The translations under genes were made by a program, and so were the position numbers. The notes beneath the pieces were generated by a model, which was not told the origin of the DNA, ran no database searches, and saw only the letters and a program-made list of their open reading frames with translations. DNA of 64,000 nucleotides from Octopus bimaculoides. Taxonomy: Eukaryota. The DNA lies in contig NC_068994.1 of assembly GCF_001194135.2 (NCBI RefSeq), forward strand, positions 46,878,871 to 46,942,870. Reading direction: 5' to 3'. Shown here piece by piece: positions 3,164-30,880 of this stretch; within the stretch, counting starts at the first letter, position 1, and each line of letters starts with the position of its first letter.

Positions 3164-3455
3164 AGAGCAGAGAATCAAAGAGAATATGAAAGCTATGCCA
3201 AAATTGATTGCCGAATTTCATAAGCAGACTGAACAGAAACAACTGTTACAGAAGAAACAGGAAGAAAAGAAAGCCAAGCTTCTTGAAGAGGCACGAGCAT
3301 ACTTTGGTTATTCGGTGGACCCACGCGACGAAAAATTCAAGCAAATGTTGGCTGAGAAAGAGGCTGCAGAAAAGAAAGCAGCAAAACAACAGAAGAAAGC
3401 TGAGAAAATGGCAAAAGTTACTGCCAGGTTATCGATGGGCAATAAAGAATCTTAA
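3164..3455 (+). CDS. GADD45GIP1: GADD45GIP1/CRIF1 coding exon 2 of 2 (spliced CDS 747 nt, 248 aa)
   Basis: Acceptor tttacag|A completes the Arg codon in frame. REQRIKENMKAMPKLI...ARAYFGYSVDPRDEKFKQML matches the CRIF1 C-terminal half (human REQHIAECMAKMPQMI...LGYQVDPRSARFQELL). Stop TAA at 3453-3455. Confidence 0.93.
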
Positions 3456-4068: not shown

Positions 4069-5168
4069 CAGTGGCCCTCAACAATTTTTTTACCTTTGGA
4101 TGGACCCTCATTACTATTTGATATTTAAAAAATCCTATTATATTTTTTTAATTAAATGTTATTAGGAACTGTGTAAAAAAATTAAAATATTTTGTATATT
4201 GAGTCATCCCATAAACACTTCTTTTATTTTTCAAAATTAAGATAAACAAAATTCTTTTTTAATCTAAACTATACTCTCTTTCATTTTCTACAATGCTCTT
4301 CCATCTATCTGGTAGACTTCCAAGGCCCTCTTCCAAAATTCACTTATCCGTGATGAAAAATACTCCTTCAGTACTGTTCTGACATCCATCATCTATAGAA
4401 TTCATATTTTTTCCGTCCAAATCATTTTGAAGACTGCAGAATAAATGATAATCAGATGGGGCAATGTCTAGCGAATATGGTGGGTGGGGCATCGTTTCCC
4501 ATTCAAACTGCTCCAGCCTTTGGAATGTCATCCTTGTTGTAATGTGATCAAGCATTATCCTGATGGAAGAACACCTTTCATTTTGAAACCAAAGATAGTC
4601 ATTTTTCTTCTAGCGCTGATGTGAATGACTGGTTCAAAGACCAAATCCAAGCTTCTCTGCTAGTTCCTCAACTGTTACGATGGGATTTTGTCCCACCAAA
4701 GTTTGCAGGATGTCCTCATCAAACTCTACAGATCTTCCAGGATGAGGTTTGTCTTCTAGGCTGCAGTTTCTGGAACCACCATTAACACTGGCGTACGCTT
4801 ATTGTCCAATCCCCAAATACTGCATTAATATTCCTTGCACTTTCTGTTGCGTCGTTGCATTTATTGAACTCACAAAACAAAATATGCCAAATATGCTCCT
4901 TTGTCACTTCCATTATAGCTTTGAAAAAATATCTGTTAAAAATCGAACAGCACTCTTCAAAATTTGCACTAAGAATAAGAATAAGGTAAAATTACTACCT
5001 GCTTTTATAGCAAGTTGATGCAGGTAGTTTATCCCATCCCCCTCCAACTTTTAGTTCATGCAATTGAAAAAAAACCACATTATTTATGAGATGACTCAAT
5101 ATCATCGAAGTTATTGTACATACATTTTAACACCAAAATCTTATGTGAACCCCACTTGAGGACCAGTG
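4069..5168. mobile_element. hAT-type MITE (CAGTGG ends) interrupted by the mariner
   Basis: Ends cagtggccctcaa / ttgaggaccagtg; 8-bp TSD gtttagag / gtttagtg (7/8). Confidence 0.7.
4199..5099 (-). mobile_element. Internally deleted mariner element
   Basis: TIRs ttgagtcatcccataaa / tttatgagatgactcaa, TA on both flanks, and a transposase remnant WETMPHPPYSLDIAPSDYHLF (mariner PYSPDLAPSDY motif). Confidence 0.85.
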
Positions 5169-5779
5169 GTTTAGTGGAATAAATAAGCCCCTGTGCTTCC
5201 TTTTTATTCTATCAGTCTCTTTTTGCCAAACTGCTACACTACATGAACATAAACAAACCAACACCAGTCATCAAACGTTGACAAAGATATGTGTGCGCAC
5301 ACACACATGCAGAAATATATGATAGCACAAAGATTCTTAGTGCCATTTCTTCAAACTCTTTACATGCCGAGTTCAAATCCTGCTGAGGTCAACTATGCCT
5401 TTCATCCCTTCGGGGGTTCAATAGAATAAAATACCAGTCAAGTACGGGGCGGGGGTGGGGGTGCAATGTAATCAACTTGATTCCTTCCCCTCAAAAATGG
5501 CCACAAACCTTGCAACAGGGGGTAAAGTTGTAATTTCAATCATTTTTACACCTTGGAAACCAGATAACCAACTTATGGGCCCAAGGGCTCCAGAAAAAAA
5601 AAATATCTTTGAAATTGAGACTCCAGTATGGCCACAGACCAATGATTAAAACTTAGTAAACAAATAAAATAAGGAAATAGGAAAGAAAACAAAAAAAAAC
5701 AAGGGAAATCTGTGAGCAAACAGAGGGTTGTGTTTTTTTTTTCTTTTAGTTTATTTAAAATTTTGTTTACATTACCATC

Positions 5780-9758: not shown

Positions 9759-11806
9759 TTAAAATGATTTGGTGTTCGTATGGTCGGCAATGGACAATTG
9801 CTTGCTGTCTGTGGCATCAGCAGGCCACATCAAGGACGAAGATTCACATGTGACGTCTGGAGCTGAGGGGGTTTTATCTTGGTTGGGTTGAGGTGCCAGT
9901 CCTTCACGATACAGCTGCAATTGTTCCAGGTACTTTTGGCACACTGCCAAGCGCCTATCTCCTTCTCCATGCTGTGACTTTGCTCCAGTGGCAGTGGTGG
10001 TGTCAAACTCAGAGGCAGAAGACGGAGTCAGTAAGCTGTCCTTGTTCAACTGGGTATCTGATAGTGATGTGGCTGTTGGGACTGTACCGGGGGTGTATAA
10101 CTGTTTTTTCTGTACATCATACAAATGCTGTTCTGTAGTTTCAATGTTTGACAAGGACAACAGTGGGGGAGAAACAGTTGCAGTTGATGATGCCAAACCA
10201 GATTTCTCAGGTGTGCAGGGATAGGTAGTACTGCACCCCTGTTGATGTTGATGGCTACTGACAGGGGATGATGGTGGGACAGTGCCTGATGCTGGACGAG
10301 GAACTCCTCTGGAAGTAGTTGATTGACTAGAATCAGTGCTGACATACTGAATGACGTCTGGTGACAACCCTGGGACTTCACTGCAACTCGCTTTTTCAAA
10401 TAGATTCTTGGAGAAAAGGGTGGGATTGAAACTGGACTTGTACAATTTCATTGATTCAGCTTCTTCAGGAGAAAAGTCTTTGTCAGAAATGGACAACCGA
10501 GAGAGGGCAGTCTGTGGAGGGGGTGACATCTTACTTTCGTCATCACCTACTACATCATCGTCGTCGTCGTCGTCATCGTCATCATCCTCATCATCATCTT
10601 CATCATCGTCACATTTTGTTGAATTTGAGTCGGGCAATGTTGCTGCCATAGCAACATTGCTAGCACTGACTGGATTGGTGTTTGTTGTCTCAGCAACCAA
10701 GCTGTCGTTACTGGCATCAGGAATCAACACATTGGTAAGGTGAGGCTCGTCTCGGCTGGCATCATGGTGACAGGACTCTGACAACTCAGTTGGCAAAGAA
10801 ACAGCATTTGTGCTGACACTACTGCTGCTGCTGCTACAGATTTCTCCGCAGTCTGCCGGGTGGCTGTGGAACCGCTGGAAATGCAGGTTCAAATGACCCC
10901 GACGACTAAAAAGCTGCGAACAGTAAATGCATTTATATTCCTTCTTGCGAGAATGTACTACCAGATGACGTTTCATGTCTTTCCTCTTTGTAAAAACCTT
11001 GCTGCATTCCATGCACTTATGGGTTTTGTCGAGGCCCTTCGGGTAAACGATCCCACCGTGGATCTTCAGATGTAGTAAGAGATCATCCTTGTTGTCGTAT
11101 TTCTTATTGCAGATCGGACAGTTGTTAATCTTACCCTTCTCTGCTGCATGCATTGCCATGTGTGTCTTGTGCATAAAGCGGGATATGTATTGCTTGCCGC
11201 ACTGTTTGCACACCCATGTTGGCTTGTCCGGCTTGTGAGTGTTCAGGTGTGATGTCAGGTGATCACGCCGGCCAAAAGACTTCTCGCAGAAAAAACACTT
11301 GTGGTTTCGTGGTGCACTGTGAATGAGCATATGCCGATCAAGGAGGAACTTTGACACGAACACTTTACTGCAGTTTTCGGTTGTGCATCGATGCAACACT
11401 TTCCGTCCATGTGCACACATTCTTCCACTACCGCCACAACTACAGTTATTGTTTTTACTTCCACCATGGCCTCCCCTCCTTTCCAGCTTACACGAGACAC
11501 ACTCATTCTTCCGGCTGCGTTTCCTCATCACTGAAGGCGGAGAGATCAAGGCTAGCTTGGTAATTTTCGAACCTACGTCGTCTGTGTCACTATTGCCAAG
11601 TAACATCTGACCGAACGTTGCTTTAGAAGACCGGGTGACACGTTTCAGATTTTGGTTACCAATGCCACCAGCTTCCAGTGGAGTTGCACTTGAACAAACG
11701 TCAACGTTTCTCTCAATTTTCAACTCTTTGCTTTTGGTACCATGGATGACGTTGTCAATAGAGATGTTTTCTTTGCAAACTTTTGCAGCGACTGAACTCT
11801 TTGAAC
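9759..11806 (-). CDS. PR/SET-PLAG gene terminal exon 7: six PLAG-type C2H2 fingers plus acidic and S/T/P-rich C-terminus
   Basis: 2048-nt exon, acceptor tttgcag|GT, stop at 9759. The fingers (about 10866-11393) align finger for finger with vertebrate PLAG ZF2-7: ISRFMHKTHMAMHAA vs TKLGYRRHLAMHAA; TKRKDMKRHLVVHSRKKEYKCIYC vs [23 protein letters not shown]. Spliced CDS 2847 nt = 948 aa. Confidence 0.92.
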
Positions 11807-11964
11807 CTGCAAACAACACCAAAAAATACAAATTATTAGCACATTCTTTTAAAAAACATTACCACAGCTTACCTACCTCATATCACTTCTCTCTTTCTCT
11901 TCTTCTCACTATTTCTTTCTTTCTCTCTCTCTCTCTCTCTTTTGTTTGTGTGTATGGTCAAATA

Positions 11965-12117
11965 TCGACCCTAGTGCATAACTCGTACTTAATTTATCAA
12001 CCCCGAAAGGATGAAAGGCAAAGTCAACCTCGGCGGAATCTGAACTCAGAACGTAACGGCAGACGAAATACCGCTAAGCATTTCGCCCGGCGCGCTAACA
12101 TTTCTGCCAGCTCGACG
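11965..12117 (-). mobile_element. tRNA-derived SINE, fourth family
   Basis: Reverse strand reads gagctggcagaaatgttagcgcgccgggcgaaatgc...gttgactttgcctttcatcctttcgggg. Copies near 9080, 18190, 21250, 35750 and 48480. Confidence 0.75.
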
Positions 12118-13981
12118 CTTCTTTCAGTTTCTGCCAAGCAAATCCATAGTAGAAGACACTTGCCTAAGGTGTTGTGCAATGTTACTGAACCTGAAACCGG
12201 GTGGTTGCAAAACCTATATGACGAAAAAGGAAATAAGATGATTGCACAGGGCAGGGTGGATGTAGAGGATGGAACAAAACGACCACAAAATGTTTGCTGT
12301 GTTGGTTGGAAACATCAACGCATTAACAAAAAATTATTTTTATATTGAGTTGTCCCCCTTGCCTTTGTTCTTTTGTTGAATGGTGATTAGTTACTTATAG
12401 ACATAGTCTGAATACAATAATAGTTCCATAGATACAGCTCTGATATATTGAAGTTATAGTGTTCACTATATTATATGTATTATTAATTAAGTCATTATCG
12501 AAAGAAGTTTTGAAGTGAGCTTATATTCTCGCTTTGATAACTCACATTATGAAGGGAAGTAACTCATGTAAACTCTTTTAGAGAAAATTTATTTAAAAAA
12601 AAAAAAAAAGTATTTTAATTCTAAGAACAACATTGACAGTTAGACATGTGCAGCATTTATATTAATATGAAGTTGATGAAATAAAACCTATGTTTTCTTC
12701 TTTGGATTTCTTTATAACTTGTATATCAAGCTTCGTCAGTGTGTGCTATGAAAATGCCATATGTACACACATCGCCCACACGCACGCACATGCACACATG
12801 CACTTGACTGTAGGGCTAAGTTCGATTTGCAGCCTCATGCTTTCAGGTTCAGTCCAATTGCATGGTACCCCAGACAAGTACAATTGTCTATTATAACCCT
12901 GGATTGACCAATACATTGTGAGTGAAAGGTTAGATGGAAACTATATAAAAAAAAAAAACCCTTAGGTATATTATCATAATTATCATCATCATCATCATCA
13001 TTTAACACCAACCTTCCATGCTGGCATTGGTTGGGCGATTTGAGACGATCAGAGAAATCAGAAAACTGTGCCAAGCTCCAAAATCTACTGTGGCCTGTGG
13101 CCTGGTTTCTGGGAACCCTTCCTAATATCAATCACATATATATGTTTGTTGTCCTCTTTAACAATTATGTGTGTGTGTGTGTGTGTGTGTGTATTTCTTT
13201 TTTTCTTTTATTTGTTTCAGTCATAAGACTGTGGCCATGCTGGGGCACTGCCTTGAGGAATTTTAGTTGAATGAATCACAGGTAGACTGACCCTTTTCCC
13301 TTTCACCTCTCTGGATCCTCACCACCCTCATCTCTCTCTCTCTCTATTTCAAGCCTTTCTCCTTCCTCCCTCGCCTCACATCCATGTTTACACTTACACA
13401 ATAGCAGTGGGTACTCCTACACAACCCACTCGATTACCCTTCCACTCGGTCCCTCTCTCTCTTTTCCACTAAACCCTGACACTACTCCTTTTACTTCCCT
13501 TCCCCTTTTCCCCTTTCATACTCCCCCTCTCTCCAATAGCATCTACTCTGTTACTCACCCCACTACCATGCCCTCCCAACAATAAATCTACCCCCTCTCA
13601 TCATGCTTTCTCCCTCTTTCACCACCTCACCTAAAAAAACGTCACTCACTCTCCCGGATTCTCCTTTTGGTCCTGGTGGCTCTTTAGTCTTGCCAATTAC
13701 AAGGTGACCTCACCAGTACTGGTGCCATGAAAAAGAAAAAGCACCTAGTACTTGGGGTTAGGAAGGGTATCCAGCAGTAGAAATCATGCCAAAACTGAAT
13801 CACTGGAGGACGACATATTCCTCTGGCTTGGCAGATCCTATCAAACTGTCCAAAAATGGAGATGATGATGATGATGATGATGATGATGGTGGTGGTGATG
13901 ATGGTGATGATAATGACGATGGTGATGAAGGTGGTGATGATGATGATGATGGTGATAAAAGGAACAGAGTTGAAGACTGAC

Positions 13982-14185
13982 CGGTGGCGCGTGAAGAAGT
14001 GAAACTGAAATGCCGTCGTGGTCGACTTCTCTCCAAGACTCTAACAACATCAGAAGGAAATGGTAGCTGAGGCAGTTCTCCTTTGACATCGGACTCCGTG
14101 GAAACAGTCTCCATTCCTTCATCATATGAGTTATCCTGTTGTACGGTGTGAGACTCAACACTGGAGTCCTCGCTGATGCCGGAAC
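13982..14185 (-). CDS. PR/SET-PLAG gene exon 6: acidic/Ser-rich linker
   Basis: 204-nt open phase 1-1 exon (SGISEDSSVESHTVQQDNSYDEGMETVSTESDVKGELPQ...RATG) with ctccag| and G|gtcagt. No domain match, so support comes only from frame and splice sites. Confidence 0.65.
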
Positions 14186-14204
14186 CTGGAGGTACACAGT
14201 GCAG

Positions 14205-14615
14205 GAATCATATTAAAAGGAAAGAAAGTATGGAAGACAAGCAGGCAGATAGGTAGGTAGATGGATGGATAGATGGATGGGTGGATGGATAGATGGATGG
14301 GTGGATGGATGGATAGACAGGGAGACAGACAGGTAGACACTTAAGTAGATACACAGGTAGATACACCAATAGATACAAAGACAGACAGATAGACAGGTAG
14401 ACAGATAGGTAGAAAGACAGGTAGACAGATGGGTAGACAGACGGGTAGACAGACAGATAGATAGACAGGTAGACAGGTAGAAAGACAGGTAGACAGACAA
14501 ACAGATAGATAGACAAGTAGTCAGACAGGTAGACAGACAGGTAGATAGACAGGTAGACAGGTAGAAAGACAAGTAGACAGACAAACAGATAGACAGACAA
14601 GTAGTCAGACAAGTG
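14205..14615. repeat. GATA/GACA-type compound microsatellite
   Basis: Runs of ggat, agac, ggtagaca and taga. Confidence 0.85.
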
Positions 14616-14942
14616 AAGTTGAACATCTTATCTGGCCACCACAGTCCCCATATCTCAATATTATTGAACATTTATGTGTAAGGCACATAACTCTGCTTAC
14701 AACAGTCTGCTTGGCTGACAAAACAGGTCCCTCTCTTACCCCCACAGTTCAGTGATTAGCTGTGACAAGGGACAGATGTAAAACAAATCAAAAACATTGC
14801 AGCTATGGAACTAATGGATAAAACAGCAGCAGCAACAGTAGTAGTAGCAGCAGTGGTGGTGGTGGTGGAAGCAACTAGTAGTAGTAGTAGTAGTAGTAAC
14901 TGCAGCAGTATTAATAGTGCCAAAAGTCACAGTACCTCTAGC

Positions 14943-14973
<31 letters not shown>

Positions 14974-15025
14974 ATTGTTGTTGTTAATTAGTTAGCTACT
15001 TTGCTAAATTAGTTAAATTGGTTAC

Positions 15026-15140
15026 CTGTGTTGATATCGGAGAGGACCGAATCAGAGACTGTCAGACAACTCTTCTCCAACATCAGCCGAGCATAGTTGG
15101 CAGCATAGCCCACCCTCAGCTCATCTCCAATGTGTATTGT
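15026..15140 (-). CDS. PR/SET-PLAG gene exon 5: PR domain C-terminal part
   Basis: TIHIGDELRVGYAANYARLM contains the SET/PR ELxxxY motif. Boundaries cttgcag| and G|gtaacc. Confidence 0.88.
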
Positions 15141-15584
15141 CTGCAAGAAAGAAACAGGGAGAAACAAGGATTAGTCACTATGGACAGTCAAACAGAACAT
15201 GCACACGTACACTTTTAATATAAAGGTAAATTGAGCTGTTTTGTTTTAGCACCCCAACATTATATATACATAAAAAGCACCCACCCTAGTAACACGTTAA
15301 AAGCTCTCGGTACACTCTGTTAAGTGGTTGGTGTTAGGAAGTACATCCAGCCATAGAAGTCATGCTAAAACAGACGACTGGAACCTGATGCAACCCTCTG
15401 GCTTGTTATCCTCCTGTCAAATTGTCCGACCCATGACCACATGGACGTTAAATGATGATGATGATGATGATGTCATTTTAACGTCTACTTTTACATGCTT
15501 GCATGGGTTAGATGGGAGCACATTGATTCAAAGTTTTCTACAGCTGGATGTCCTTCTTGTTGCCAACCATCACTTGTTTCTATG

Positions 15585-15822
15585 GTGCATTTTAGAAAAA
15601 TAAAAGTAAGGAGTCGATATCCTCCACCATCATCAGTACAAGAACTGGAGACTGTTTTAGCTGAAGAATGGACAAAAATTCCTTTGGAAACAATTCAAAC
15701 TTTGTACAAGTCCATACTTTGTAGAATTCAAACTGTAATTACTGCCAAAGGCAGTCCTACCCAATACTAAAATAAATTTATTTGAAATTTTAAGGTGTTT
15801 CCATTATTTTGTCCAACCCCTG
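15585..15822 (+). mobile_element. 3' fragment of a Tc1-like element (intron of the PR/PLAG gene)
   Basis: Remnant PPSSVQELETVLAEEWTKIPLETIQTLYKSILCRIQTVITAKGSPTQY* followed by the TIR-like end ccattattttgtccaacccctg. Confidence 0.75.
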
Positions 15823-16050
15823 TGTGTATATATATATATACACATATCCCCACATCTATCACACAAGTAAGTTGGTGCATATACACACACTCATACAAAT
15901 CTGCATTCATGCAGATGCACACACAGACATCCACTACTCAAACATACCCATATAGATACTTGCAACAAATACATGCATACATAACACAAATATCCATATA
16001 TAAACACACATTTACACAAAAACACACACAAAATTTAAAAACATACTTAC

Positions 16051-16215
16051 CCGAATTGCTACAAAATATATTTTTCCATCACACTGGTAAGCTTCTAGAT
16101 TTTGTTGTGTGTCAGCTAGACAGGCTGACCGTACAAACATCATCCAGTTGCACTGACCGTTATCAGTCATGTCCAGTGTGACCACCGACTGAATAGATTC
16201 TCCACCATTAAATAC
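16051..16215 (-). CDS. PR/SET-PLAG gene exon 4: PR domain core
   Basis: VFNGGESIQSVVTLDMTDNGQCNWMMFVRSACLADTQQNLEAYQCDGKIYFVAIR contains the PR signatures NWMxFVR and QNLxAYQ. 165 nt, phase 0-0, boundaries ttctag| and |gtaagt. Confidence 0.9.
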
Positions 16216-16714
16216 CTAGAAATGGACAATGGTAAAGAGACAGTGAGACAGTCCCACAATCCATTGGTGTATATCGCGCATGGTACACTTTGTCTAATCA
16301 GACCAAAAAGGAAGTTTCTAGAGGCAATTAAGGGAAGTGATATATCAAGCATTGGCAACTTTTTTATAGGGGCCACACTACTAAAAAAATTTAAGGTCAT
16401 TTTTCATTGCTGTGCCATTCAGAAAGCACTGCAAGCTGCAGTTTACCCACGACTGCTCTACATGGTTGTTCAACCTGCTAGAAATAGCAGCCAAATAACA
16501 CACACACAAACAAGCAAACAAACACAGAGTGTAAGGAATATTCTGTTGCATGTATTTTTATGGACATTGACCGATAGATTTCAAACTGACCAAAATTTTA
16601 TCAATCTCATCGTTCAAAGTACTGTCCTCATTTTTGGTAACTTATAAAACTAATTAAAACAACAACAATAAAACAAGCAATCAAAAATTTTTTTTTTTAA
16701 ATAACTGAATTTAC

Positions 16715-16863
16715 CTTTAGAATAAGTGAATTTGTCTGTACAGGTGTGTAATTGGCATCTGCTGGAAAAGGAGGGGCTACAACAGGTCCGAATTTAGAAC
16801 GCGCTGGTATCACACGTTTGGCAAAAACTCCTCTTTCTGAAACTGAACAGTGAATGAGAGAAC
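16715..16863 (-). CDS. PR/SET-PLAG gene exon 3: PR domain N-terminal part
   Basis: RGVFAKRVIPARSKFGPVVA resembles PRDM10 [20 protein letters not shown]. Acceptor ctttag, donor AAG|gtaaat. Confidence 0.88.
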
Positions 16864-17951
16864 CTAAAGTTGGTGATGAAGTGGGACTTAAAACAAAATT
16901 ACAGAAAGAAACAAGTTTTCCTTTCCACCCAAGAACCTCTGTCACATCAGAGACAGCATTTCCATCAAATAAAATGTACATTTGAGCCAATGAAGGAGTC
17001 TGATAGTAGCCACTCGACCTGTTAGAAATAAGAGTCAAATAAATGTCCTTCAAATCACACTCCCACTTTCAACCATCTTAACAGAAAAATGGGAAAGACA
17101 CATTACATAAAAAATATCTTAGATATAGGCGCATATTGAGTTTCACCATGGTCGCTGGACCTGTTAGACATTGCAATCAGATCATCATTTAGTGTCCATT
17201 TTTCTATACTGGCATGGGTTGGATGGATTGACAGGGGCAGGCAAGGCCAGAAGCTGCATCAAGTTCCATAGACTGTTTTGGCTTGGTTTCTACAGCTGGA
17301 TGCCTTTCCTAATACCAACCACTTTACAGAGTGTACTGAATGCTTTTTACAGGGTACCATCACCAGTGCTTTGTATGTGGCACCAGCACTCTTTACATGG
17401 CACTGTGGTTTCAGGATCTTGATTCTATTGTGGAAGACAGGTCTTCTTGAGAACAGCAACACACCATATACCTCGGTCCTTTGCCACATCTCCTCTCAAA
17501 TCATACAATATCATTCTTGAAAAAAGGAATGGCCACATTAGATAATACAGTCTTACATACATACCTAAAAAGACAGAATGTTCAGAGTTGATATGCTTTT
17601 GATCATAGGACTGTCTGGTTAGGGCTTACCTGGGGTTAAACAACAGTACCTTTCTCAACTCCAGCAGGAAAATGTATAACCATCTCTTTCTCTTGTGGAG
17701 GTGCATGGTTTGGTGGTTAGGATATTGAATTTATGAGCATTGTGATTTTGGTTCCTGGACCAAGCAATGTCTTGTGTTCTTGAGCAAAACATTTCTTTTA
17801 CATTGTCTCAGTCCACTCAGCTGGTAAAAATGAGTAAATCTAGTGATGGACTGGCATCCCATCCAGGGAGGAATATATATGCCAGAGAAACTGGGAAACT
17901 GGCCCCTATGCCCCTTAAAGGGTATTATGGTCAAACCATTTCTTTCCTTAC

Positions 17952-18104
17952 CTTTTAAGGGATGAGTCTTGAGATTTGGTCGAATAACTAGTCCTTTTGG
18001 CAGTGTGAGGTGGGCCATGGGAGGAATGACCCTGTCCGGAATGTCTTGAAGGGGTCCATGTTCAGGGCAGTCCCGATTATTGCTGCGTCCACATTCATGG
18101 CACC
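17952..18104 (-). CDS. PR/SET-PLAG gene exon 2: PR zinc knuckle
   Basis: Translates to (W)CHECGRSNNRDCPEHGPLQDIPDRVIPPMAHLTLPKGL, the C-x2-C-x7-C-x2-H knuckle of PRDM4/10/15-type proteins. Boundaries tttaag| and G|gtaagg, phase 1-1. This frame is not in the supplied ORF track. Confidence 0.88.
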
Positions 18105-19637
18105 CTTAAAGGAATAAAAAAAAAGAAAAGAATCAAATATTTGTTTCAAATTTTGGCACAAGACCAGCAATTTTAGTGGGGAGGAGACAGTCAATCACAT
18201 CAACCATCCCCAGTACTTGTCTGGTACATATCTCATTGACCCAGAGAGGACGAAAGGCAAAATCAACACAAGCAGAATTTGAACTCAGAACATAATGAGT
18301 TAGAAGAAATAAAGAAAAGCATTTTTACCAACGTTCTAACAATTATGGAGCTCACTGCTTTAGAAGATAATCAAATATTAATCAATATGGTGATGATGGT
18401 GGTGATGATGATGATGATGATGGTGGTGGTGATGGTGGTGGTGGTGGTGGATGATAGATCTTCCATCAACAGTTTCAATGATAAGCATTCAGTTGTTTAA
18501 TCACCTCAACAACCTCCTCTTTGAATTAGCATATAGACGGCTGAGTACTCCACAGACACGTGTGCCCTCCAACATAATTCTCAGGCTGAAATCAATGGTG
18601 ACACAATATGTAATATGGTTGGACCTTTCAGTCACATGCACAATCCATCCAACAGGTTTCCATCTAGCCAGTTTTATTCACATGGCTTGGGTTAACCTAA
18701 GGTCATAAAAAAAAAAAAAGGTAGCCAAAGGTGCCATACCGTAGGATTGAAACCAGAACATGACTATGAAGTGAGGTTCTTAACTGCTCAGCTAAGTTTG
18801 CAGTCATTAGGGGCCAATATAAATCATTTCCTCTGATCGTAAGCCCACTCAAAGCTGATCTGGGGTTCAACAACAGTGACAGCCTGTTAGACCTATTAGA
18901 AATAATAACCAAATCACCCTCAAACCACACTACATCCTACCATCATCATCATCATAATCATCACTTTAGCGTCCACTTTTACCATGGTTACAAGGGTCAA
19001 ACAAGAGTTTATTTAGGCAGATTTTCTATGGCCAGATGCCCTTCCTGTCACCAACCCCTACTTGTTTCCTAACAAGTTAATCTTTCCCTAGGGCCAGACA
19101 TGTTTTTGCAGAATATTGGAAATGAATGACACTGCTTGTATGAGAGTGATTATCATTTTAAAACTGTCCAATGATATCAAGACAATGGAACACAAACAAA
19201 CACACACAGGCTATAGTAGAAGACACTTGCCCAAGGTGCTACGCAGTGGGACTGAACCCAGAACCATGTGGTTGGTAAAGCAAGCTACTTACCAGACAGC
19301 CACTCCTGCGCCTATATGTATATGTATAAAAAGACATGATGTTCGTGGGTGGAAAGTCTTTTATGACAGAGCTACTTGACCAGGGCTGACCTGGTACTAA
19401 GCAACAACAGCAGCCAACAACACTCACATTGTCATGGAAACATAGAAGACGACAAAAATAGAAAAAAAAAAACACTAAGAAAATAAAAAATTAATTAATT
19501 AAAATACTTTTCGTAATTAGAAGATAATTTTCAATTCAATCAAGTTTGATAGGAACAAGTTTCAGACTGGTTTTCGTTGGTTTCAAAGCATAATCTTTAG
19601 TTCATTGGACTGTGTGTGTTCAATAATTAATGGTCTG

Positions 19638-19670
<33 letters not shown>

Positions 19671-20352
19671 GTTGTTGTTATTGTTGTTTATTTAGTTTTT
19701 ATTGGTCAGTACAGGCCATCTATTTTGGTGGTCAGCATTGTTCATCTTGGACAATAGTTTATTTTTGATGTTTTTCTTTATCTTGTGCCAAAAATAAATT
19801 TGCTTCTACTGCCTCCATTACTTCCCACTACTGCCACCACTACCACCCACTCACTGCCACAACCACCGCCAACTGCTATAAGCATTTCACCAGTGAAATC
19901 ACAAAACCACCCACCCACCCACCAGCACAACCACAACATACCACAACACCACCAACCATCCAACACCTACCATCACCACCATCGATATCATAAGCCAACA
20001 AGAAAGCTTCTATGTGATCACTCGGCTTGCTAGACATAGTAACCTAATTTCTCTTAATTATAGCCTACCTTCTTGAAAAGGAAGAGACACTGTATAATGT
20101 ATTCCTAGATACACTCTGTCTGAATACAAAATGAAATGGCCATAACAGGAATACCTTTGATCATAGGGTTGGTTGATCAGAACTGACCTGTACACAGAAG
20201 CCAGCTCAGGAGATAATGCTGTGGTTGCAGTGTATCTTTAATACTTTAACATTCAGATTATACTATCAGATCTAATGCTTATTCATTCACATTGTTTTGA
20301 CTTAATCATGTATGATCTAACTTTGATGATTTCTCTATTTTACTTGTTTCAG

Positions 20353-20409
<57 letters not shown>

Positions 20410-21072
20410 CGACAATCTTCTTTCAGTTTCCATCTACAAAATCCACTCACAAGGCTTTGGTCAGCTCGAGGTTATCATCATCGTCATCATCATCATTGTT
20501 GTTGCCATTGTCATCATTTTAAATGTCCCCTTTTCCAAGCTTGCATAGGTCAGATGGAATTTGTTGAGGTGGATTTCCTAAGGTTGGAGCCTAACCCTAC
20601 CACCTGAACAGTCACAATAAATCTCACACAAAAAACCAATGCTGGCAGACCAGGCTAAATTCTAACCCATGAATCATGCTCCAAAACATATCCCAATATC
20701 CACAAATCCCTGTGCCATGGGTCCACTCAGATGACATAAGTCTACTCAAGCAGACACTTACCTTGTAAACCTCTGTATATTATACAAGCCTGTATGTGGT
20801 CGGTTGACCTGTTAGAAATAGTAAATCAAATCTTCATCAAACCACACTCTTCCATCTTAGGTAATGTGCAAATTACACTAGTAAAGATGATGTAGTTATG
20901 GTTTGAATGGCCTTTGATCACAAGTTATCATTCTGCTCCATCGGGGTTGACCTAGGGCTAAACAACAATTCCAATCTGTTACACACTTGTCATAGATAAA
21001 GAGGTTCAATGGGCATTGGTTCTAATCCTCAGATTAACTAATAAACCCATAAGAGGTTTGAAAGATACTTAC

Positions 21073-21085
21073 ATATGCCATCCAT
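21073..21085 (-). CDS. PR/SET-PLAG-type zinc finger gene, coding exon 1 (13 coding nt, MDGI-W)
   Basis: aaaATGG context with an in-frame upstream stop. Donor T|gtaagt at 21073/21072; the T joins GG of the next exon to give the Trp of the knuckle motif W-C-x2-C. Probable acceptor tttctag at 21136. Confidence 0.7.
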
Positions 21086-21746
21086 TTTCTTCAGTTGTGT
21101 CTTCTAAGCATATTCTCTAAGGTTAAATGCCAAACCTAGAAATCCAAAACAAATAATAACAACAATAACAATGAAAATAATAATAATAACAATAATAATA
21201 ATAATAATAATAATAAAGTAATTTTTTATTGGCCACAAGGGCTAATATAAAGATATAATAATAATAATCTTTTCTACTCTTGGCACAAGGTCCGAAATTT
21301 TGGTGGGAGGAGGCCAGTCGATTAGATTGACCCCAGTACATAACTGGTACTTAATTTATCAACCCCAAAACGATGAAAGGCAAATTCGACCTCGGCAGAA
21401 TTTGAACTCAGAATGTAAAGACTGATGAAATATCGTTAAGCATTTTGCCCGGTGTGCTAATGGTTCTGCCAGCTCACTGCCTTATAATAATGATAATAAT
21501 AATAAATTAGGCTCCCTGCCTAATAATAATAATAATAATAAATAGTATGCGAAAGAGATGTGAAGATATTAAATAAAAAGATATTAAACAATATTTTCCA
21601 AAGAGTTTAAAATGCCTATAAGTGTGTAGATTATTAGAAATGATGAAGTGATGTGTTACAAATTTGCTTAGGGATAACGGCAGACATATTAAAATTAAAA
21701 TGTACAACCATCATGTGATGTCCAGAAAAGGGTACACACAAGCACA

Positions 21747-22330: not shown

Positions 22331-22631
22331 AAACATACACCCATATGTAATTGTAGTTGGAGATTACCTTATATATATATATATATATATATNNNNNNNN
22401 NNNNNNNNNNNNNNNNNNNNNNNNNNNNNNNNNNNNNNNNNNNNNNNNNNNNNNNNNNNNNNNNNNNNNNNNNNNNNNNNNNNNNNNNNNNNNNNNNNNN
22501 NNNNNNNNNNNNNNNNNNNNNNNNNNNNNNNNNNNNNNNNNNNNNNNNNNNNNNNNNNNNNNNNNNNNNNNNNNNNNNNNNNNNNNNNNNNNNNNNNNNN
22601 NNNNNNNNNNNNNNNNNNNNNNNNNNNNNNN

Positions 22632-23840: not shown

Positions 23841-24187
23841 NNNNNNNNNNNNNNNNNNNNNNNNNNNNNNNNNNNNNNNNNNNNNNNNNNNNNNNNNNNN
23901 NNNNNNNNNNNNNNNNNNNNNNNNNNNNNNNNNNNNNNNNNNNNNNNNNNNNNNNNNNNNNNNNNNNNNNNNNNNNNNNNNNNNNNNNNNNNNNNNNNNN
24001 NNNNNNNNNNNNNNNNNNNNNNNNNNNNNNNNNNNNNNNNNNNNNNNNNNNNNNNNNNNNNNNNNNNNNNNNNNNNNNNNNNNNNNNNNNNNNNNNNNNN
24101 NNNNNNNNNNNNNNNNNNNNNNNNNNNNNNNNNNNNNNNNNNNNNNNNNNNNNNNNNNNNNNNNNNNNNNNNNNNNNNNNNNNNNNN

Positions 24188-24473: not shown

Positions 24474-27400
24474 AAAAAGGCACCCATGCTGGTATTATGT
24501 ATAAAGCACTGGTGTTGTTACCATGTAAAAATAGGCCCAGTACATTCTGTAAAGTAGTTGGCATTAGGAAGGTCATCCAGCCCTAGAAACTATACCAAAA
24601 CAGACAATTGGAGCCTGGAAAACAGACATTAAATGATGATGATGATGATAACAACAATGATGAAGATGATGATGTGCCACCCCAGTGGCCAGTAGGAGTT
24701 ACATAAAACATCATAGCCAGAAATACAAGTTTTACATCCTTTATGATAATTCCCTTGACCAAAATGTAAACAACCATGCAGTTGATTTGAAAGAAGATAA
24801 AACTGAGATACGGTAGTCCCAGCGCATAGTTTATTTATAATAAATTTATGATTTCATTCTTTATTGCTATATACTGTCACAACATTGTGTTTACATGCAT
24901 AAAATCATACTTTTTTGCCTCTACAAAACCACTTTAAAATATCTTTCAAATAAGTATATGATTAAATACACTAAATTAGTTTCTCCATTTGTAAAATAGG
25001 GGTGCAGCTTATATGCAGCAAAATATGGTAATTAATAAAATTTCTTGGCTCACCATATTATATATGTTAGAACTGACATCACTGTTTATTTTTCATGCAG
25101 CAGGTGTCCCCATGTATGTCTCCCCACTCACACCAGTCACTCTACAGTGTGAGATCTCATGGTTATTGCTCTGTATTTTTCATGTTGTTTAGCTCCAGTT
25201 TAGCTTTGAAAGTGCAGGCCTATAATCAAAGCCATTACAGCCATGACCATCCCATCTTTTTTGTACATTGAAGATTATATAACATAATGTGTTCTTCCTT
25301 TAAGATGGTAGGGAGTGATTTAGGGAATGTACAGAGTGAACATTATCAATGTTTGCAGTTCTTTAGCCCTAGGTCCGCCCTGAATGAGAACAAAGCATTC
25401 TAGCAGTAACGTAGCTAGTGGGGAGGCATGATCCACTTGGGTGACACTTTTATGGAGACAGCCCACTCTGGGAGGAGCTTTTAAGGACATAGCACTTTTG
25501 GGTCTACTGTATAAGCCTGTACAGTGGGTAGAGGGGACAGCAAACTCAAGGGCTACCCCGAAGAGAACACACTCTAGATATAAAGTAACAGTAAAGTTAC
25601 CTTCTCGAGTCATGCTGGTTTCCCAGTTTCTATGGCATATGAATTCCCCACCAGGACGGGACGCCAGTCCATCAAAGGATTACTCATTTTTGCCAACTGA
25701 GTGGACTGGAGCAACATGAAATGAAATGTTTTGCCCAAGGACACAACACATCACCCAGTCCAGGAATCAAAACCACAATCTTATGACATGAGTGCAACAC
25801 CCTAACCACTAAGCCATACAGTTTCACACACTCTACCTATACCACTGCAATTTAGGCAGGGTTATCCCATCCCTTTTTTTTTTTCTTTCTTTCTTTACAC
25901 AGTGTATCTGGAATAGTGGTCCTTAACATAGACAGTAGCACCCACTTCGGGGTGTTGTGATCTCTTTAGTGGGTGGCAGATATCAAGAGGACACTGGGTG
26001 TTTAGAAGCATCATGATTTTTCTCAGAAATAAAATACTTAAACCAGGCGCAAAACTTATATTTCATCTTTTTAGCATTACTTTGCCAAATGTAATATTTA
26101 TTCACATTGTTTTGAATTATTCATGCATTGCCTTGTAGCGTTGATATTTCAATGACATGCTAGCTAATTTTTAAAGTAATATTGTAGGGTAAGTGTGAGA
26201 GAGGCCAGATCTGGTTGGTTTGTAGATAAAACTGGTCAGATATGGCCAGTTTAAATGCAAAAGAATTAAACATATTTTCAAAATAATCTTAATCAGGATA
26301 AGAATAGGAATAGAACATTGTTATCAGCTAGCGGAATCATGACAGACGACGAACCAAAATCCAATATAATTTCATTATATAAATAAGGCGGCAAACAGAC
26401 AGAATAGTTAACACATTGGACAAATTGCTGTGTGGCATTTCTTTGTTCTGCATTCAGATTCCATTGAAGTCAACTTTACCTTTCTTCCTTTTGAGATTGA
26501 TAAAACAAGTCCCAGTCGAGCAATGGGGTCGATGTAATTGATGTATCCCATACCCTAAAATTCCTGACCTTGTGCCAAAATTTGAAACCATTATTATATA
26601 AGTACCCAACATGTTTAGTTATTTTCATAAATATTTAATACAGGGGCCACTAGTCCATGCAGATATCTAAGAAGGGGTACATGCTGGATGCAATGGCATT
26701 TGGGACATAGAGATGGTAAAATCAGCTTTTGTTTGATTTAAAGTTATCTGTGGTGGAAACAAGGAAAGCACGAGTAAGTTAAGGTCCACAAAGCTGAGTT
26801 CGGAAAAAAAGGGGTTAGATGCTATAAACACAAACACCCACACTACTTGTGAGCTGTAAAGTGGGGGGAATACCATCCAGCTGTGTACCCTAGCATTTTC
26901 ACTACTGAAAATGAATTACTGCTTTGAGGGGGTTCCTTATTTTTTTTTTTTTTTTTAAAGGGGTTTTTGTAAAAAGCTATTCAGTAAAAAAAGGGGCACC
27001 AAGTTACAAAATGGTAAAAAAAAGCTGATCTAAAGCTACATAATATAAGGTGTCCTTGTTTTCTCAAGATTGTTGGACACAATTTTGTGGGTGATTTGGC
27101 AATCATTTCTAGTAAGTTGAATGATTAGACATAGACCCTCCATGGCTTGACATAAACTGCTGTGCTTAGTCCAAAGTCCTAACTCAACAAACCCACGAGC
27201 AAAGACATTGTAAACATTACCACCCCCATTAACACAACCATTATGTATCTTGGACTACATCACAAATGTAACATTCCTTTTATTTATTTTTTTTCGATGT
27301 TGTTTAACCCCCAGTTCGATCTGATTTATCAAAACAGACCAGCGGCCAAGGGCGTTCCAGCCATGACCATCTCGTTTATTTTTATTGATAAAAGACAATG

Positions 27401-28303
27401 GTGTCTTTCTTTTATTTAAGACGAAAGGATATGATTTAAGTGAGATTTAACTGTCATTTCTAAGAGGCCGAACGACAACATGGAGGTTATTTTGATGGAT
27501 CGACATTACAACTGCTGTTGTTTAGCCCCAGGTCAGCACTGACCGAGCAGATCTGCGATCAATGACAATTCTGTCTTTTCGGAATACATAATTAAATATA
27601 GCTTCCCTTTTTTTGTCTTAAGATACAAGGATGTGATTTGGTTGCTATTTCTAGCAGTACGAGAGACTACGTCGATTTTCCCATGTAGGCTCGTACCGTT
27701 GTTTAGCCCGGGGGATCGGCCTTCGTTATAGCAGACCTGTGACCAAAACTATGGAGCACCCGTCCCTTTAATTTTCTTTTTATTTTGTCAGGTATAATGT
27801 ATTTAATACAATATATAACACAGCCTCAGATGTGATTTACGAAAGATTTGGCTACTATTTCTAGTAGGTTTAAATGACTATGTAGAGACAGCCTTGTTGG
27901 CTCGTGGCTGGATTTTTTATTATGACAAGGGCTGTTAGGAGGTGGATATGAAAACAAAAAACCCATATTTACATACAGAATACAAATATATTTCGAAAAG
28001 AGAAGTGGGGAAAAAAACGTGTCTGTGACTGTGTGTGTGTGTATAAACAGAAAACACATTCAGTCATATACAGTTACCAGACATCTAAAATATACACTGG
28101 TGCATGCTTACATGTGCATATATTTACATACAAACAGAAACAGCCAGTTATATTCACAGACACCCACATCATACACGAGCTAATGAAGGCGACTATTACT
28201 TGGTCGATCATTCTGCTAGAAATAGTAACCAACTGTCCCTCGAAATGATGCTGTACAGACTTAAATAAATAAAAAAAAAGAATACATTGGACACTGTAGT
28301 CCC

Positions 28304-28335
<32 letters not shown>

Positions 28336-29221
28336 AAAAAAAAGAAAATGACAGAATGATCAGTTTGGAAGATCTTTCATCACAGATTTGCACGATCGGG
28401 CCTGACCTGGTGCTAAATAACAGCCATTCACAAACGTACACCTACAGTTTTACAAAACACACACAAAAAAAATAAGCGCATACATTTACATACATACGTA
28501 TACACCTTAATAAAACAAAGGGCTATATACACATACATACATATAAATTCTCGTACACACTGTATAATATATATATATATATACACAATGATATATATAT
28601 ATATATTGAAGAAAGTAGTGGTGGTGGTGGTGGTGTCACAGCATGGCTTTAGCAGTCATGACTAAAATAAACTACAGAACCCCATATTTACAANNNNNNN
28701 NNNNNNNNNNNNNNNNNNNNNNNNNNNNNNNNNNNNNNNNNNNNNNNNNNNNNNNNNNNNNNNNNNNNNNNNNNNCTGCCTTCTAAGTTTTGTCTAATAA
28801 CAAAAACGGTAAAAGACTTTTTCGGGTATTAAGCAATCACGAAACATACTGTTCATTTCTTTTTCTTTTTCTTTTTTTACGGGTGTTGTTTTAGGGAAAA
28901 CTAAATTAAATTAGGAATTATAAGAAAAAAAAAAAAAAATTGATCGGGATACATTTTCAAAAGAATCTTTACATCAAAGATGTACTTTTAGACGCGATTT
29001 GGCTGTCTTTAAGTTTGGTTGTTGTTTTTGGACCCAAACTTAAAAACATCATTACACAAATTAAAATTATTGTTGAAAAAAATATATCACAATTTAAACA
29101 ACCTGTATTTCTTATTTTTGTAATTAACACCTTCCACGCACACACATACGCACAGAAAAACTTTTTTTTAAAAGGAATTTTAGAAAATATGTGAAGTAAA
29201 ATAAAAAATTCTAAGACTCAC

Positions 29222-29640
29222 TTGCTTTCTTTCTTTTTTTCCAGTAAAATAACTTGAGATCAAAACGTGTTCTTTTCACTCAGCAGGTGCGATATTACAT
29301 ATACATATATATATATAATAATCTATATTAGAGAGTGAGAGACAGGGAAAGATGGAAGTTGATAAAAAGATAACTGCATGTAGATATTCAACGATGGCAG
29401 AAGCGAGAGAGATGCTGATTATACAGAAGTAAACAGAGACATCGAATGTGTTAAAACGTCATGACAGGATCGAATCTAGGTCCAGGGAGTACGAGAGAAG
29501 TAATCAGTGTAGGTCTTTTGAAAAAATGCCATTTGCTGTCGTCAGCGTCGCGCGAACCACGCTTCTGTCTTTCTTTTTTTTTTTTTAGATTTTTTTTCTT
29601 TTTTCTCACACTGTCAATCTCCGGTACACGGTACCACCGA
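29222..29640 (-). promoter_or_regulatory. Candidate non-coding first exon / promoter of the PR/SET-PLAG gene
   Basis: Locally CpG-rich (cgtcagcgtcgcgcgaaccacgc), with a strong minus-strand donor AA|gtgagt at 29222/29221. The 5' boundary is uncertain. Confidence 0.35.
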
Positions 29641-29678
29641 AGAGCCTGTAATACATAGCCAATATATACAGAGTAACC

Positions 29679-29714
<36 letters not shown>

Positions 29715-30374
29715 ATACAAATATATGCGTTTGTGCTGTTATATGTGTGTATACAAATATATGTATTTATTTACATATATATATTTGTATACATACATTT
29801 ACTGGTCAGCGATACGGTTTCCAGATGTCACAAGAATCGTGTAAGAAAACACTAATAAAAAAACAAATAAAAAAAGAATGTTTCTAAAAAAACGAGAGAA
29901 ATGATAACGAGGAAGAAGGGATTTCCCAAATAAAGTATATATTATTCTCTCTCTCTCTCTTTATTCCTCTCTTTGTTTTTCTCTCTGTCTTTCTCTATAT
30001 ATCTAATTGCTAACTTCAGTTGCTTACATTAGTTACTTCCCTTGATGGCCGCTCTTTTACACTTGGGTGGAAAAACAGACACTATCCCCTCCCCTCTCTT
30101 GTTTGCTTTTATATTATGTTTCTTAAAAGAAACTTTCCGAAGTTGGGAGAAACTTTTTTTTCTTGAACAACTTCTTTTTCTCTTTTTTCATTTTTTTTTC
30201 CTGTTTTATTCTTCTGGTATTTTTATAACGTCTAAAACCTTTATGGTCAAATAACCACTAATAAAAAATCGCGCGTGTATATATATATATATATATATAT
30301 TTCGTTTTTGGATTTGGTTTGCAAGACTTTTTATGTGAGTACGTGTGTTGAAGCATATTCTGTTGTGTCTGGGG

Positions 30375-30605
30375 AGAGTCATTTTCTAATCGTGCCTTAA
30401 AATTTAACACACACACACCGTTAAAATTTCCACTTATTATTTTTATTTTCCTAAAATTTTCGTTGCGTCTTGCAACCTTTTGACAGAGTCAAAACTATTG
30501 AAAAGGTTGCAAGACGCAACGAAAATTTTAGGAAAATAAAAATAATAAGTGGAAATTTTAACGATGCGTGTGTTAAATTTTAAGGCACGAAAAGAAAATG
30601 ACTCT
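30375..30605. repeat. AT-rich fold-back (MITE-like) element, right end truncated by an N gap
   Basis: agagtcattttct...ttgcaacctttt / aaaaggttgcaa...agaaaatgactct, arms about 105 bp. Confidence 0.85.
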
Positions 30606-30665
30606 NNNNNNNNNNNNNNNNNNNNNNNNNNNNNNNNNNNNNNNNNNNNNNNNNNNNNNNNNTAT

Positions 30666-30880
30666 GGTACTACTAAAGCAGCGCGGACCCGAACGCGCAG
30701 TCGCGCGTCCGCGCTAGCTAGTCTTGAGTGGTCGATCCTAACCCTAACCCTAACCCTAACCCTGTCCCTAACCCTAACCCTAACCCGCGTGTGCAAATGA
30801 ATACGTGTTTAGGGTTAGGGTTAGGATCGACCACTCACGACTAGCTAGCGCGTTCGGGTCCGCACTGCTTTAGTAGTACC
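30666..30880. repeat. Fold-back element containing (CCCTAA)n and (TTAGGG)n repeats
   Basis: Arms ggtactactaaagcagcgcggacccgaacgcgc...gagtggtcgatcctaaccc and their reverse complement; telomere-type repeats at 30737-30786 and 30810-30825. Confidence 0.88.

Follow-up and report, generated by a model that had tools for sequence, protein, structure and literature searches.

Within a window of 64,000 nucleotides from Octopus bimaculoides (contig NC_068994.1, positions 46,878,871 to 46,942,870; the coordinates below are those of the window), we analysed a gene on the minus strand whose protein combines a PRDM-type zinc knuckle and PR/SET domain with zinc fingers of the PLAG type, referred to here as the PR-PLAG gene. 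The limits of its coding sequence are 9759-21085, and exons of the 5' untranslated region (5'UTR) may lie further upstream of 21085. The initial annotation of this DNA had joined seven minus-strand exons in frame into a protein of 948 aa. When the gene was rebuilt from the raw sequence the seven coding exons and their frame were retained, with AG/GT at every border, but the length was not: the acceptor of exon 3 had to be moved 21 nt downstream, to ttcactgttcag/TTTCAG, which makes exon 3 16842-16715 and gives a coding sequence of 2826 nt and a protein of 941 aa. The corrected junction of exons 2 and 3 reads THPLK/VSERGVF, and the protein of a related cephalopod reads THPQR/VAERGVF at the same place. 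The corrected translation is identical residue for residue (100%) to XP_014780376.1, deposited as "PR domain zinc finger protein 10 [Octopus bimaculoides]", to which the proteins of O. vulgaris and O. sinensis have 96.8% identity; the RefSeq and UniProt label of the gene is 'PR domain zinc finger protein 10(-like)'.

All of the motifs first noticed in this protein (WCHEC..CPEH, FGPV, NWMMFVR, QNLEAYQ, ELRVGY, RKRSRK and six C2H2 fingers) are present in the rebuilt model. Pfam found PRDM2_PR (9.6e-25), SET (1.3e-6), C2H2 fingers and the PRDM zinc knuckle Zn_ribbon_PRDM4 (5.8e-6; 26.4 bits against a cut-off of 25.8) in the whole protein, with the knuckle ahead of the PR domain and the fingers C-terminal to it, as in PRDM4/9/10/11/15. 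Coding exon 1 (21073-21085) holds the ATG, Met-Asp-Gly-Ile and the first base of the WCHEC Trp codon, followed by a canonical gtaagt donor, and the resulting start MDGIWCHEC is identical to that of XP_014780376.1. Exon 2 (17952-18104) encodes the zinc knuckle (WCHECGRSNNRDCPEH), which is the Zn_ribbon_PRDM4 match, and the linker to the PR domain (LTLPKGLVIRP); the solved PRDM4 structure 3DB5 aligns from EHGP on, and by blastn the exon matches positions 119-264 of L001, a transcript contig of the related cephalopod. The PR domain itself is spread over three exons. Its N-terminal third (ERGVFAKRVIPARSKFGPVV) is in exon 3 (16715-16842), supported by the junction shared with the relative and RefSeq and by a match to L001 270-401 that begins at 16844. 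The core (CNWMMFVRSA..QQNLEAYQCDGKIYFVAIR) is in exon 4 (16051-16215), which gives PRDM2_PR at 1.4e-12 when searched alone and matches L001 425-555, and the C-terminal part (IGDELRVGYAANYA) is in exon 5 (15026-15140), which aligns to the PRDM4 and PRDM10 structures and to L001 559-671. Exon 6 (13982-14185) is a Ser/Asp/Glu-rich linker (GISEDSSVESHTV..DEGMETVSTESDVK) with 79% nucleotide identity to the relative's mRNA, and like exon 7 it lies within the model identical to RefSeq. Exon 7 (9759-11806), a single open reading frame (ORF) of 690 aa with Pfam C2H2 matches, encodes a linker, a basic patch, the six fingers (10866-11387), an acidic run, a Ser/Thr/Pro/Gln-rich tail and the stop codon. 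The patch, RKRSRK (11508-11525), is a candidate nuclear localisation signal, and basic stretches precede the fingers in other family members too. The acidic run (DDDEDDDEDDDDDDDDDDD, 10554-10610) lies in the C-terminal low-complexity region and may be an activation region.

A further question was whether the PR exons and the finger exon belong to one transcript. A protein homology search with the octopus finger array alone gave no match, and the search with the knuckle-PR part gave only two transcript-derived proteins of 285 aa (69% identical), from L001 (2229 nt) and L002 (1833 nt). These Logan contigs, from two sequencing runs, represent transcripts of the related cephalopod. Both are intronless, and on each of them the knuckle and PR domain are followed by the same six-finger array, although the gene caller had cut each contig into two ORFs, one of 285 aa with the PR domain and one with the fingers. 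L001 and L002 share 99.6% identity, and each contains one different single-base indel in an A-run which the other reads through (the differences are at about 835 and 946 in L001 and at about 857 and 967 in L002), with the ORF consequently broken at different places. These indels are probably assembly or sequencing errors, although they could be polymorphisms, and since each is read through by the other contig the relative's mRNA has one ORF. When L001 was compared with the window by blastn, exons 2-7 were matched in order and the alignment broke at the exon borders. An in-frame stop lies in L001 upstream of the ATG equivalent to the octopus start, and therefore the protein begins four residues before the knuckle. 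No upstream exon was found by blastn of the relative's 5'UTR against the 64-kb window.

The finger array was compared with the exact database sequences PLAG1_HUMAN, PLAL1_HUMAN and PLAL2_HUMAN (P0193, P0208, P0223), and with a database PRDM4-type protein (P0017) and a PRDM10-like protein (P0025). The octopus array aligns almost without gaps to PLAG fingers 2-7, as had been proposed: it scored 157 bits against human PLAG1 (43% identity over 178 aa, 1 gap), 151 bits against PLAGL2 (42%, 1 gap) and 150 bits against PLAGL1 (42%, 2 gaps), but only 89 bits against the PRDM4-type array (30%, 10 gaps) and 77 bits against the PRDM10-like array (28%, 13 gaps). Solved poly-finger proteins gave about 73 bits for the best single aligned stretch. 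Among the proteins compared, then, the octopus array is closer to the PLAGs than to any other C2H2 protein, and the fingers group with PLAG and not with PRDM10/15 or PRDM4, an outcome on which the initial proposal depended. The PLAG-type signature was found in the octopus array in all its elements, namely a second finger with CX4C, then R(K/R)DHL..HL.TH and after it a DPNK-type linker (in octopus an 8-residue K/DP(D/N)K linker), the H.A.HAA..G linker (MAMHAAEKG in octopus), a long linker ahead of finger 6 (in octopus, 14 residues separate the last His of finger 5 from the first Cys of the next finger), a sixth finger with K(R)KD(V/M)(R/K)RH..VH and a last finger of the HX4H form. When fingers 2-7 of 19 taxa were aligned, 39 columns proved invariant, and all the taxa share the unusual finger types and linker lengths. 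The neighbour-joining tree of this alignment mirrors the species tree, with deuterostomes at 100%, chordates at 92%, arthropods at 100% and bivalves at 99%, and with kiwi and human PLAGL1 together at 96%. At the sequence level, a finger tree that follows the species tree is the pattern expected of an orthologous family.

We then used the PR protein of the relative (P0001) in a profile search, which returned 817 proteins. Among the best matches, those whose arrays are of PLAG type, scoring 105 bits or more to the octopus fingers with few gaps, were sharply apart from the rest (at most 100 bits, at least 10 gaps). The architecture of PR domain plus PLAG fingers was found in more than 15 distant taxa, so the fusion does occur elsewhere, as the initial annotation had suggested should be examined. 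Among molluscs, it is present in bivalves (scallops, Solemya and Dreissena) and in gastropods (Aplysia, Nucella and Patella, the last named 'PRDM10'), and beyond them in the brachiopod Lingula ('PRDM10'), the insects Timema and Anabrus, the crayfish Procambarus ('PLAG1 isoform X1'), the starfish Patiria ('PRDM4-like') and the crinoid Antedon. Among chordates it is present in amphioxus (database names 'PLAG1-like' and 'PLAGL1-like'), in the shark Pristiophorus ('PLAGL1-like') and in a 609-member cluster of bird 'PLAGL1' proteins. Automated names for one and the same family are thus split among 'PRDM10-like', 'PRDM4-like' and 'PLAG1-like', as foreseen. A tardigrade protein named 'PRDM15-like' (P0022) clusters with PR-PLAG in the tree of PR domains described below, but its fingers gave 73 bits, below the 105-bit class, and it was not counted as a member.

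The vertebrate members changed one premise of the initial annotation, which had taken vertebrate PLAG proteins to be devoid of a PR domain. Pfam found no PR domain in human PLAG1, PLAGL1 or PLAGL2, so the statement holds for these proteins; it does not hold for bird PLAGL1 or for the shark PLAGL1-like protein, since the PR domain was found by Pfam in kiwi (6.7e-38) and shark (3.7e-33), as it was in amphioxus (2.1e-38). In kiwi PLAGL1, residues 305-777 align to the entire human PLAGL1 with 57% identity, while the first 185 residues or so are the knuckle and PR domain. At the C-terminus, kiwi PLAGL1 has LPHFHHAFK and human PLAGL1 LPHFHHAFR, and LP(R/Q)FHQ(A/V)FQ closes the proteins of amphioxus, crinoid, starfish and shark, as it does human PLAG1 and PLAGL2. 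The 774 aa of duck PLAGL1 form a single ORF on contigs of 2.5 kb, obtained from two runs, compared with a genomic span of 26 kb for the gene, and therefore the PR-bearing bird form is a real mRNA. The retention of the PR domain in bird PLAGL1 and the shark PLAGL1-like protein strengthens the case for the PR-bearing form as the ancestral one.

Several further observations were made on these proteins. In five bivalve members (P0011, P0012, P0021, P0063 and P0095) a low-complexity insertion of about 150-370 residues splits the PR domain between its N-terminal and C-terminal halves, into two stretches matched by the hidden Markov model, and domain-based PRDM surveys may have overlooked the bivalve PR-PLAG proteins because of this split. 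Shorter annotated isoforms exist in amphioxus (P0157, P0162), Aplysia (P0172, P0173), crayfish (P0189) and Patella (P0191). Those of amphioxus and Aplysia start within the PR domain and are without most of it; PR-plus and PR-minus isoforms may exist side by side in invertebrates, as in PRDM2, MECOM and PRDM16. Most non-cephalopod members have a conserved extra C2HC-like finger (W.CS.C...F.TF..LE.H.C) directly after the PR domain (P0008, aa 207-227; P0175, aa ~204-224), at the place of the first finger in PRDM10-type proteins, and this finger is absent from the octopus protein. Lastly, human PLAG1 falls in a 90% cluster to which MOS kinase proteins of birds (349 aa) were assigned as well. PLAG1 and MOS are neighbouring genes in vertebrates, and a gene model that fused the two presumably gave rise to this artefact of the clustering.

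For the PR domain, we aligned the octopus knuckle-linker-PR region with solved structures, obtaining 76 bits for PRDM4 (3DB5; 2L9Z for the knuckle), 68 bits for PRDM10 (3IHX), 44 bits for PRDM11 and 42 bits for PRDM9. Proteins of PRDM4 type (98 bits) and PRDM10 type (92) came out of the profile search below the PR domains of other PR-PLAG members, which scored about 110-114 bits. In a neighbour-joining bootstrap tree of 65 PR domains, the PRDM10/15 proteins formed a clade (86%) with the octopus protein outside it; PR-PLAG, PRDM10/15 and one unnamed group were set against PRDM4 and the PRDM9-like proteins at 91%, and a grouping of PLAG with PRDM4 was never seen (0%). The PR part had initially been judged most similar to PRDM10; by raw score it is slightly closer to PRDM4, and in the tree it falls with PRDM10/15 in the larger group and not with PRDM4, though not inside PRDM10/15. 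The deuterostome PR-PLAG domains were grouped at 88%, and in 81% of the replicates the nearest neighbours of the cephalopod PR domain were solely PR-PLAG domains. Compared with the active PRDM9 (4C1Q), the octopus domain has Arg at the Asn of 'VNCA', as in PRDM4 and PRDM10, while the Tyr of 'VWY' is kept, within GY.

The neighbourhood of the gene gave a separate line of evidence. On the plus strand at 34843-39980 lies an orthologue of CHCHD7, with three exons (34843-34977, 37951-38049 and 39876-39980) encoding 112 aa with a twin CX9C motif. Its sole match among solved structures was human CHCHD7 (2LQT, 3.2e-21), and Pfam gave CHCH at 1e-6. It is head-to-head with the PR-PLAG gene, the two start codons being 13.8 kb apart. 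The amphioxus PR-PLAG gene also has a gene head-to-head upstream (contig L003, 4270-6396, minus strand), of 109 aa and matching only CHCHD7 (3.5e-14). In human, CHCHD7 and PLAG1 are head-to-head with 500 bp between them (PMC9405559). The octopus gene thus lies in a PLAG1-type neighbourhood.

Taking these analyses together, we consider it very probable that the octopus gene is an orthologue of the PLAG family (PLAG1, PLAGL1/ZAC1 and PLAGL2), in what is apparently the ancestral bilaterian form of that family: a PRDM-type zinc knuckle and PR/SET domain, a disordered linker and the PLAG fingers. The initial annotation had already inferred a PR-bearing proto-PLAG; the present results support this and extend it through bird and shark PLAGL1 and the conserved position of CHCHD7. 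The ancestral status of the PR-PLAG form applies to bilaterians only, these being the animals compared. Finger 1 and the C-terminal LPRFHQAFQ motif would then have been lost in cephalopods, and the PR module would have been lost from all three paralogues in mammals and kept in birds (PLAGL1) and shark (PLAGL1-like).

Some of the results weigh against this interpretation. The octopus protein and that of the related cephalopod have six fingers and not the seven of PLAG, which the other invertebrate members have, and the finger-1 position in octopus is occupied only by a degenerate Cys/Gly-rich stretch. Both C-terminal PLAG motifs (LLGFLPLN-like, and LPRFHQAFQ or LPHFHHAFR) were searched for in the octopus protein and not found; they are present in the human, kiwi, shark, amphioxus and crinoid proteins and degenerate in arthropods. 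The predicted base contacts of fingers 4 and 5, given below, are wholly unlike the human ones, so that the DNA motif of the octopus protein, as read from these residues, may differ. For O. bimaculoides itself, the support for a single transcript is the identity with the RefSeq model. In the neighbour-joining PR tree, all PR-PLAG domains formed one clade in only 7% of the bootstraps, and the best tree places the long-branched cephalopod domain just outside the PR-PLAG group; a single PR-PLAG clade is not claimed on the PR domain alone. In the search for the C-terminal motifs, a likeness of QKYLEQLQLYREGLAP in octopus to LGYMETLRFLENLP in bivalves was noted, but it was too faint to be used.

An orthologue of PRDM10 (or of PRDM10/15) with a shortened finger array, as the databases name the gene, would account for the 68 bits to human PRDM10 and for the 91% grouping of PR-PLAG with PRDM10/15 and the unnamed group. 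We regard this as very unlikely, and already largely refuted, given the exclusion of the octopus protein from the PRDM10/15 clade, the much poorer match of its fingers to a PRDM10-like array than to PLAG1, its start only four residues ahead of the knuckle with no N-terminal extension, and the PLAG1-typical CHCHD7 neighbour. Moreover, PRDM10-like proteins exist alongside PR-PLAG in Dreissena (P0073 with P0021) and Branchiostoma belcheri (P0014), and the separate PRDM10 that one would look for was found as a canonical PRDM10-like protein of 1465 aa (P0038) in Argonauta hians, that is, in another octopod than O. bimaculoides. From this separate protein in an octopod, "PRDM10" is a misnomer for the octopus gene. 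PRDM10 and PRDM15 do resemble it in the knuckle directly ahead of a PR domain with CNWMMFVRPA-type and ELKVWY-type motifs, but their length is 1100-1700 aa, their N-terminal region is long, their 10-20 fingers are unrelated, and they are encoded by separate genes in the same or close species. An identity with PRDM4 has in its favour the shared knuckle, PR domain and six fingers, the best solved-structure match (including the 2L9Z knuckle) and the 'PRDM4-like' name of the starfish member. That the gene is a mollusc PRDM4 orthologue is nonetheless highly improbable, since PRDM4-type proteins form a separate clade in the PR tree, have a ~390-aa N-terminal region and evenly spaced fingers that are not PLAG-like (79-89 bits and 10 gaps against the octopus array), and are found together with PR-PLAG proteins in both Antedon and Patiria.

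A different concern is that the model could be a chimera, produced by prediction or read-through, of a PR-only gene and a separate single-exon PLAG-like gene. The finger exon alone is indeed a long ORF, the relative's contigs were split by the gene caller, and the PR part is listed apart as 'PRD15, partial' in some bird annotations. We think that there is scarcely any chance of this, the contig splits being single-base A-run indels at differing places, each read through by the other contig, and the PR part and fingers being together on one intronless contig of the relative, in the single 774-aa ORF of the duck mRNA contigs and in the same architecture across more than 15 distant taxa. The combination could also be secondary, having arisen in some lineages by exon shuffling from a PRDM gene, with the PR-less mammalian form being ancestral. 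The poorly supported PR-PLAG clade (7%) and the sampling of bilaterians only would allow for this. Against it stand the presence of the architecture in lophotrochozoans, ecdysozoans, ambulacrarians, a cephalochordate and vertebrates, the clustering of the deuterostome PR domains, and the grouping of PR-bearing bird PLAGL1 with human PLAGL1 by the fingers; one origin with later losses needs far fewer events, and a secondary origin is to our mind a most improbable alternative to the PLAG orthology of an ancestrally PR-bearing gene.

With regard to its function, the octopus PR-PLAG protein would be a nuclear, sequence-specific transcription factor, with RKRSRK as a plausible nuclear localisation signal. 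Its fingers would read G/C-rich DNA much as those of PLAGL1 and PLAG1 do. Base-contacting residues were predicted as positions -1, 2, 3 and 6, with finger 4 read by hand. They are best kept in finger 3 (RDHS in octopus, RDHN in human PLAG1), finger 6 (KKDR and TKDR) and finger 7 (RGHL and RDHR), and differ in finger 4 (SFMT and TLGR) and finger 5 (NDDL and SGVE). The bipartite site of PLAG1 is bound by fingers 3, 6 and 7, and therefore the octopus motif is expected to be related and G/C-rich but not identical. The finger region of PLAGL1 binds G4C4 and G4N6G4-type sites, and its targets are shared with PLAG1 and PLAGL2 (PMC5737700). The acidic and Ser/Thr/Pro/Gln-rich tail may serve as the effector region. 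The PR domain would be a cofactor-docking or a weak or inactive methyltransferase module, docking being likelier than strong methyltransferase activity in view of the Arg at the 'VNCA' position, and the gene is probably transcribed divergently from CHCHD7.

Base composition was also compared along this part of the window. The stretch at 27000-35999 is raised in CpG, with observed/expected values mostly of 0.7-1.27 per kb across 27-35 kb (one 1-kb bin, which is largely assembly gap, has 0.41), compared with 0.15-0.41 across 19-27 kb and at 36 kb. This composition suggests that CHCHD7 and the PR-PLAG gene may share an unmethylated promoter region that acts in both directions, and 5'UTR exons of the latter may lie within the stretch. 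Ten assembly gaps (runs of N) are present in the window, at 1142-1151, 22393-22631, 23841-24187, 28694-28775, 30606-30662, 31976-32599, 44633-44819, 49485-49498, 60304-60378 and 63069-63573. Half of them fall between the PR-PLAG start codon and CHCHD7, and those at 28694-28775, 30606-30662 and 31976-32599 interrupt the CpG-raised stretch, so upstream exons or promoter sequence may have been lost in these gaps.

Other features of the window were also recorded. On the other side of the PR-PLAG gene and tail-to-tail with it are two exons of a GADD45GIP1/CRIF1-like gene on the plus strand (~297-752 and ~3165-3455; Pfam CR6_interact 7.3e-13 and 7.3e-17). A dispersed repeat of about 150-280 bp, with 71-85% identity among copies, occurs in both orientations and in part within PR-PLAG introns, at 21241-21520, 11964-12113, 18136-18386, 48471-48685, 26446-26597, 35757-35853 and 5345-5449. 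Its pseudo-ORF reads ..SSNSAEVDFAFHPFGVDKLSTSY.., and it had no Rfam or tRNA match, the Rfam and tRNA scans of the whole window being empty. An ORF fragment on the minus strand at 4343-4609, with ..HPPYSLDIAPSDYHLF.., had no significant Pfam match; we take it to resemble a relic of a mariner/Tc1 transposase.

Set beside the human PLAG proteins, the octopus protein has fingers 2-7 of the same type, order and linker length, a basic patch before the fingers and a Ser-rich tail, and its locus shares with human PLAG1 the head-to-head CHCHD7. It differs from them in the added zinc knuckle and PR/SET domain, in lacking finger 1 and the LLGFLPLN-like and LPRFHQAFQ motifs, and in being about twice as long. 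The nearest counterparts in overall design are bird PLAGL1 (Apteryx XP_025940075.1, 777 aa; Anas, 774 aa), the Pristiophorus PLAGL1-like protein (733 aa) and the amphioxus 'PLAG1-like/PLAGL1-like' proteins (XP_066273591.1 and others), all of which combine knuckle, PR domain and PLAG fingers in a single chain, with an upstream head-to-head CHCHD7 as well in amphioxus. Unlike the octopus protein, those of birds and shark have seven fingers, the extra C2HC-like finger after the PR domain and a C-terminal LP(H/R)FH(H/Q)(A/V)F motif, and that of amphioxus has seven fingers 68-71% identical to the human PLAGs, an LPRFHQAFQ end and the isoforms without most of the PR domain. Finger proteins made with and without a PR domain are known from PRDM2 (RIZ1/RIZ2), MECOM (MDS1-EVI1/EVI1) and PRDM16, where the PR-less form is oncogenic. 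There, however, the two forms are isoforms of one gene, while the annotated PLAG genes of mammals are fixed in the PR-less state.

Perhaps, then, the PLAG genes are an unrecognised PRDM subfamily dating from at least the bilaterian ancestor and paired since then with CHCHD7, with the mammalian PLAG1, PLAGL2 and PLAGL1 fixed in a 'PR-minus' state. The growth-promoting and oncogenic behaviour of PLAG1 and PLAGL2, and perhaps the new imprinted promoter of PLAGL1, would be results of PR loss, in parallel to RIZ2, EVI1 and short PRDM16. We put this forward tentatively, as a possibility whose odds fall somewhat short of even. In our literature search, which included PRDM papers up to 2026 (0 mentions of PLAG1), no paper linking PLAG proteins to a PR domain was found; most subscription journals were outside its scope, and prior publication is possible. 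The accessible text of a 93-species PRDM survey gives 14 subfamilies, named for their human members, with no mention of PLAG (PMC4760075). A paper on mollusc PRDM genes does not mention PLAG either. The octopus gene itself is ordinary and already annotated, and what appears to be unrecognised is the reading at the level of the family, with PLAG as a PRDM subfamily whose PR domain was lost in mammals.

For the octopus genome alone, the outcome is that the gene name and one exon border are corrected. The wider meaning comes from the vertebrate genes. PLAG1 is the oncogene of pleomorphic adenoma and, in livestock as in humans, a major locus for body size; PLAGL1/ZAC1, an imprinted gene, is a tumour suppressor with a part in transient neonatal diabetes, and PLAGL2 is an oncogene. 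To our knowledge they are all regarded as plain zinc-finger factors, and no invertebrate history is known for them. If our interpretation is true, the list of PRDM subfamilies is incomplete, the invertebrate 'PRDM10-like' and 'PRDM4-like' genes discussed here are misnamed, and the PLAG family acquires both a deep evolutionary past and models among the invertebrates. The head-to-head pair of CHCHD7 and PLAG, common to octopus, amphioxus and human, would count among the more ancient conserved pairs of divergent genes, a hint that the two may share regulation. Our interpretation would also open the question of what mammals lost with the PR domain, and of whether the PR-plus PLAGL1 of birds differs in growth control.

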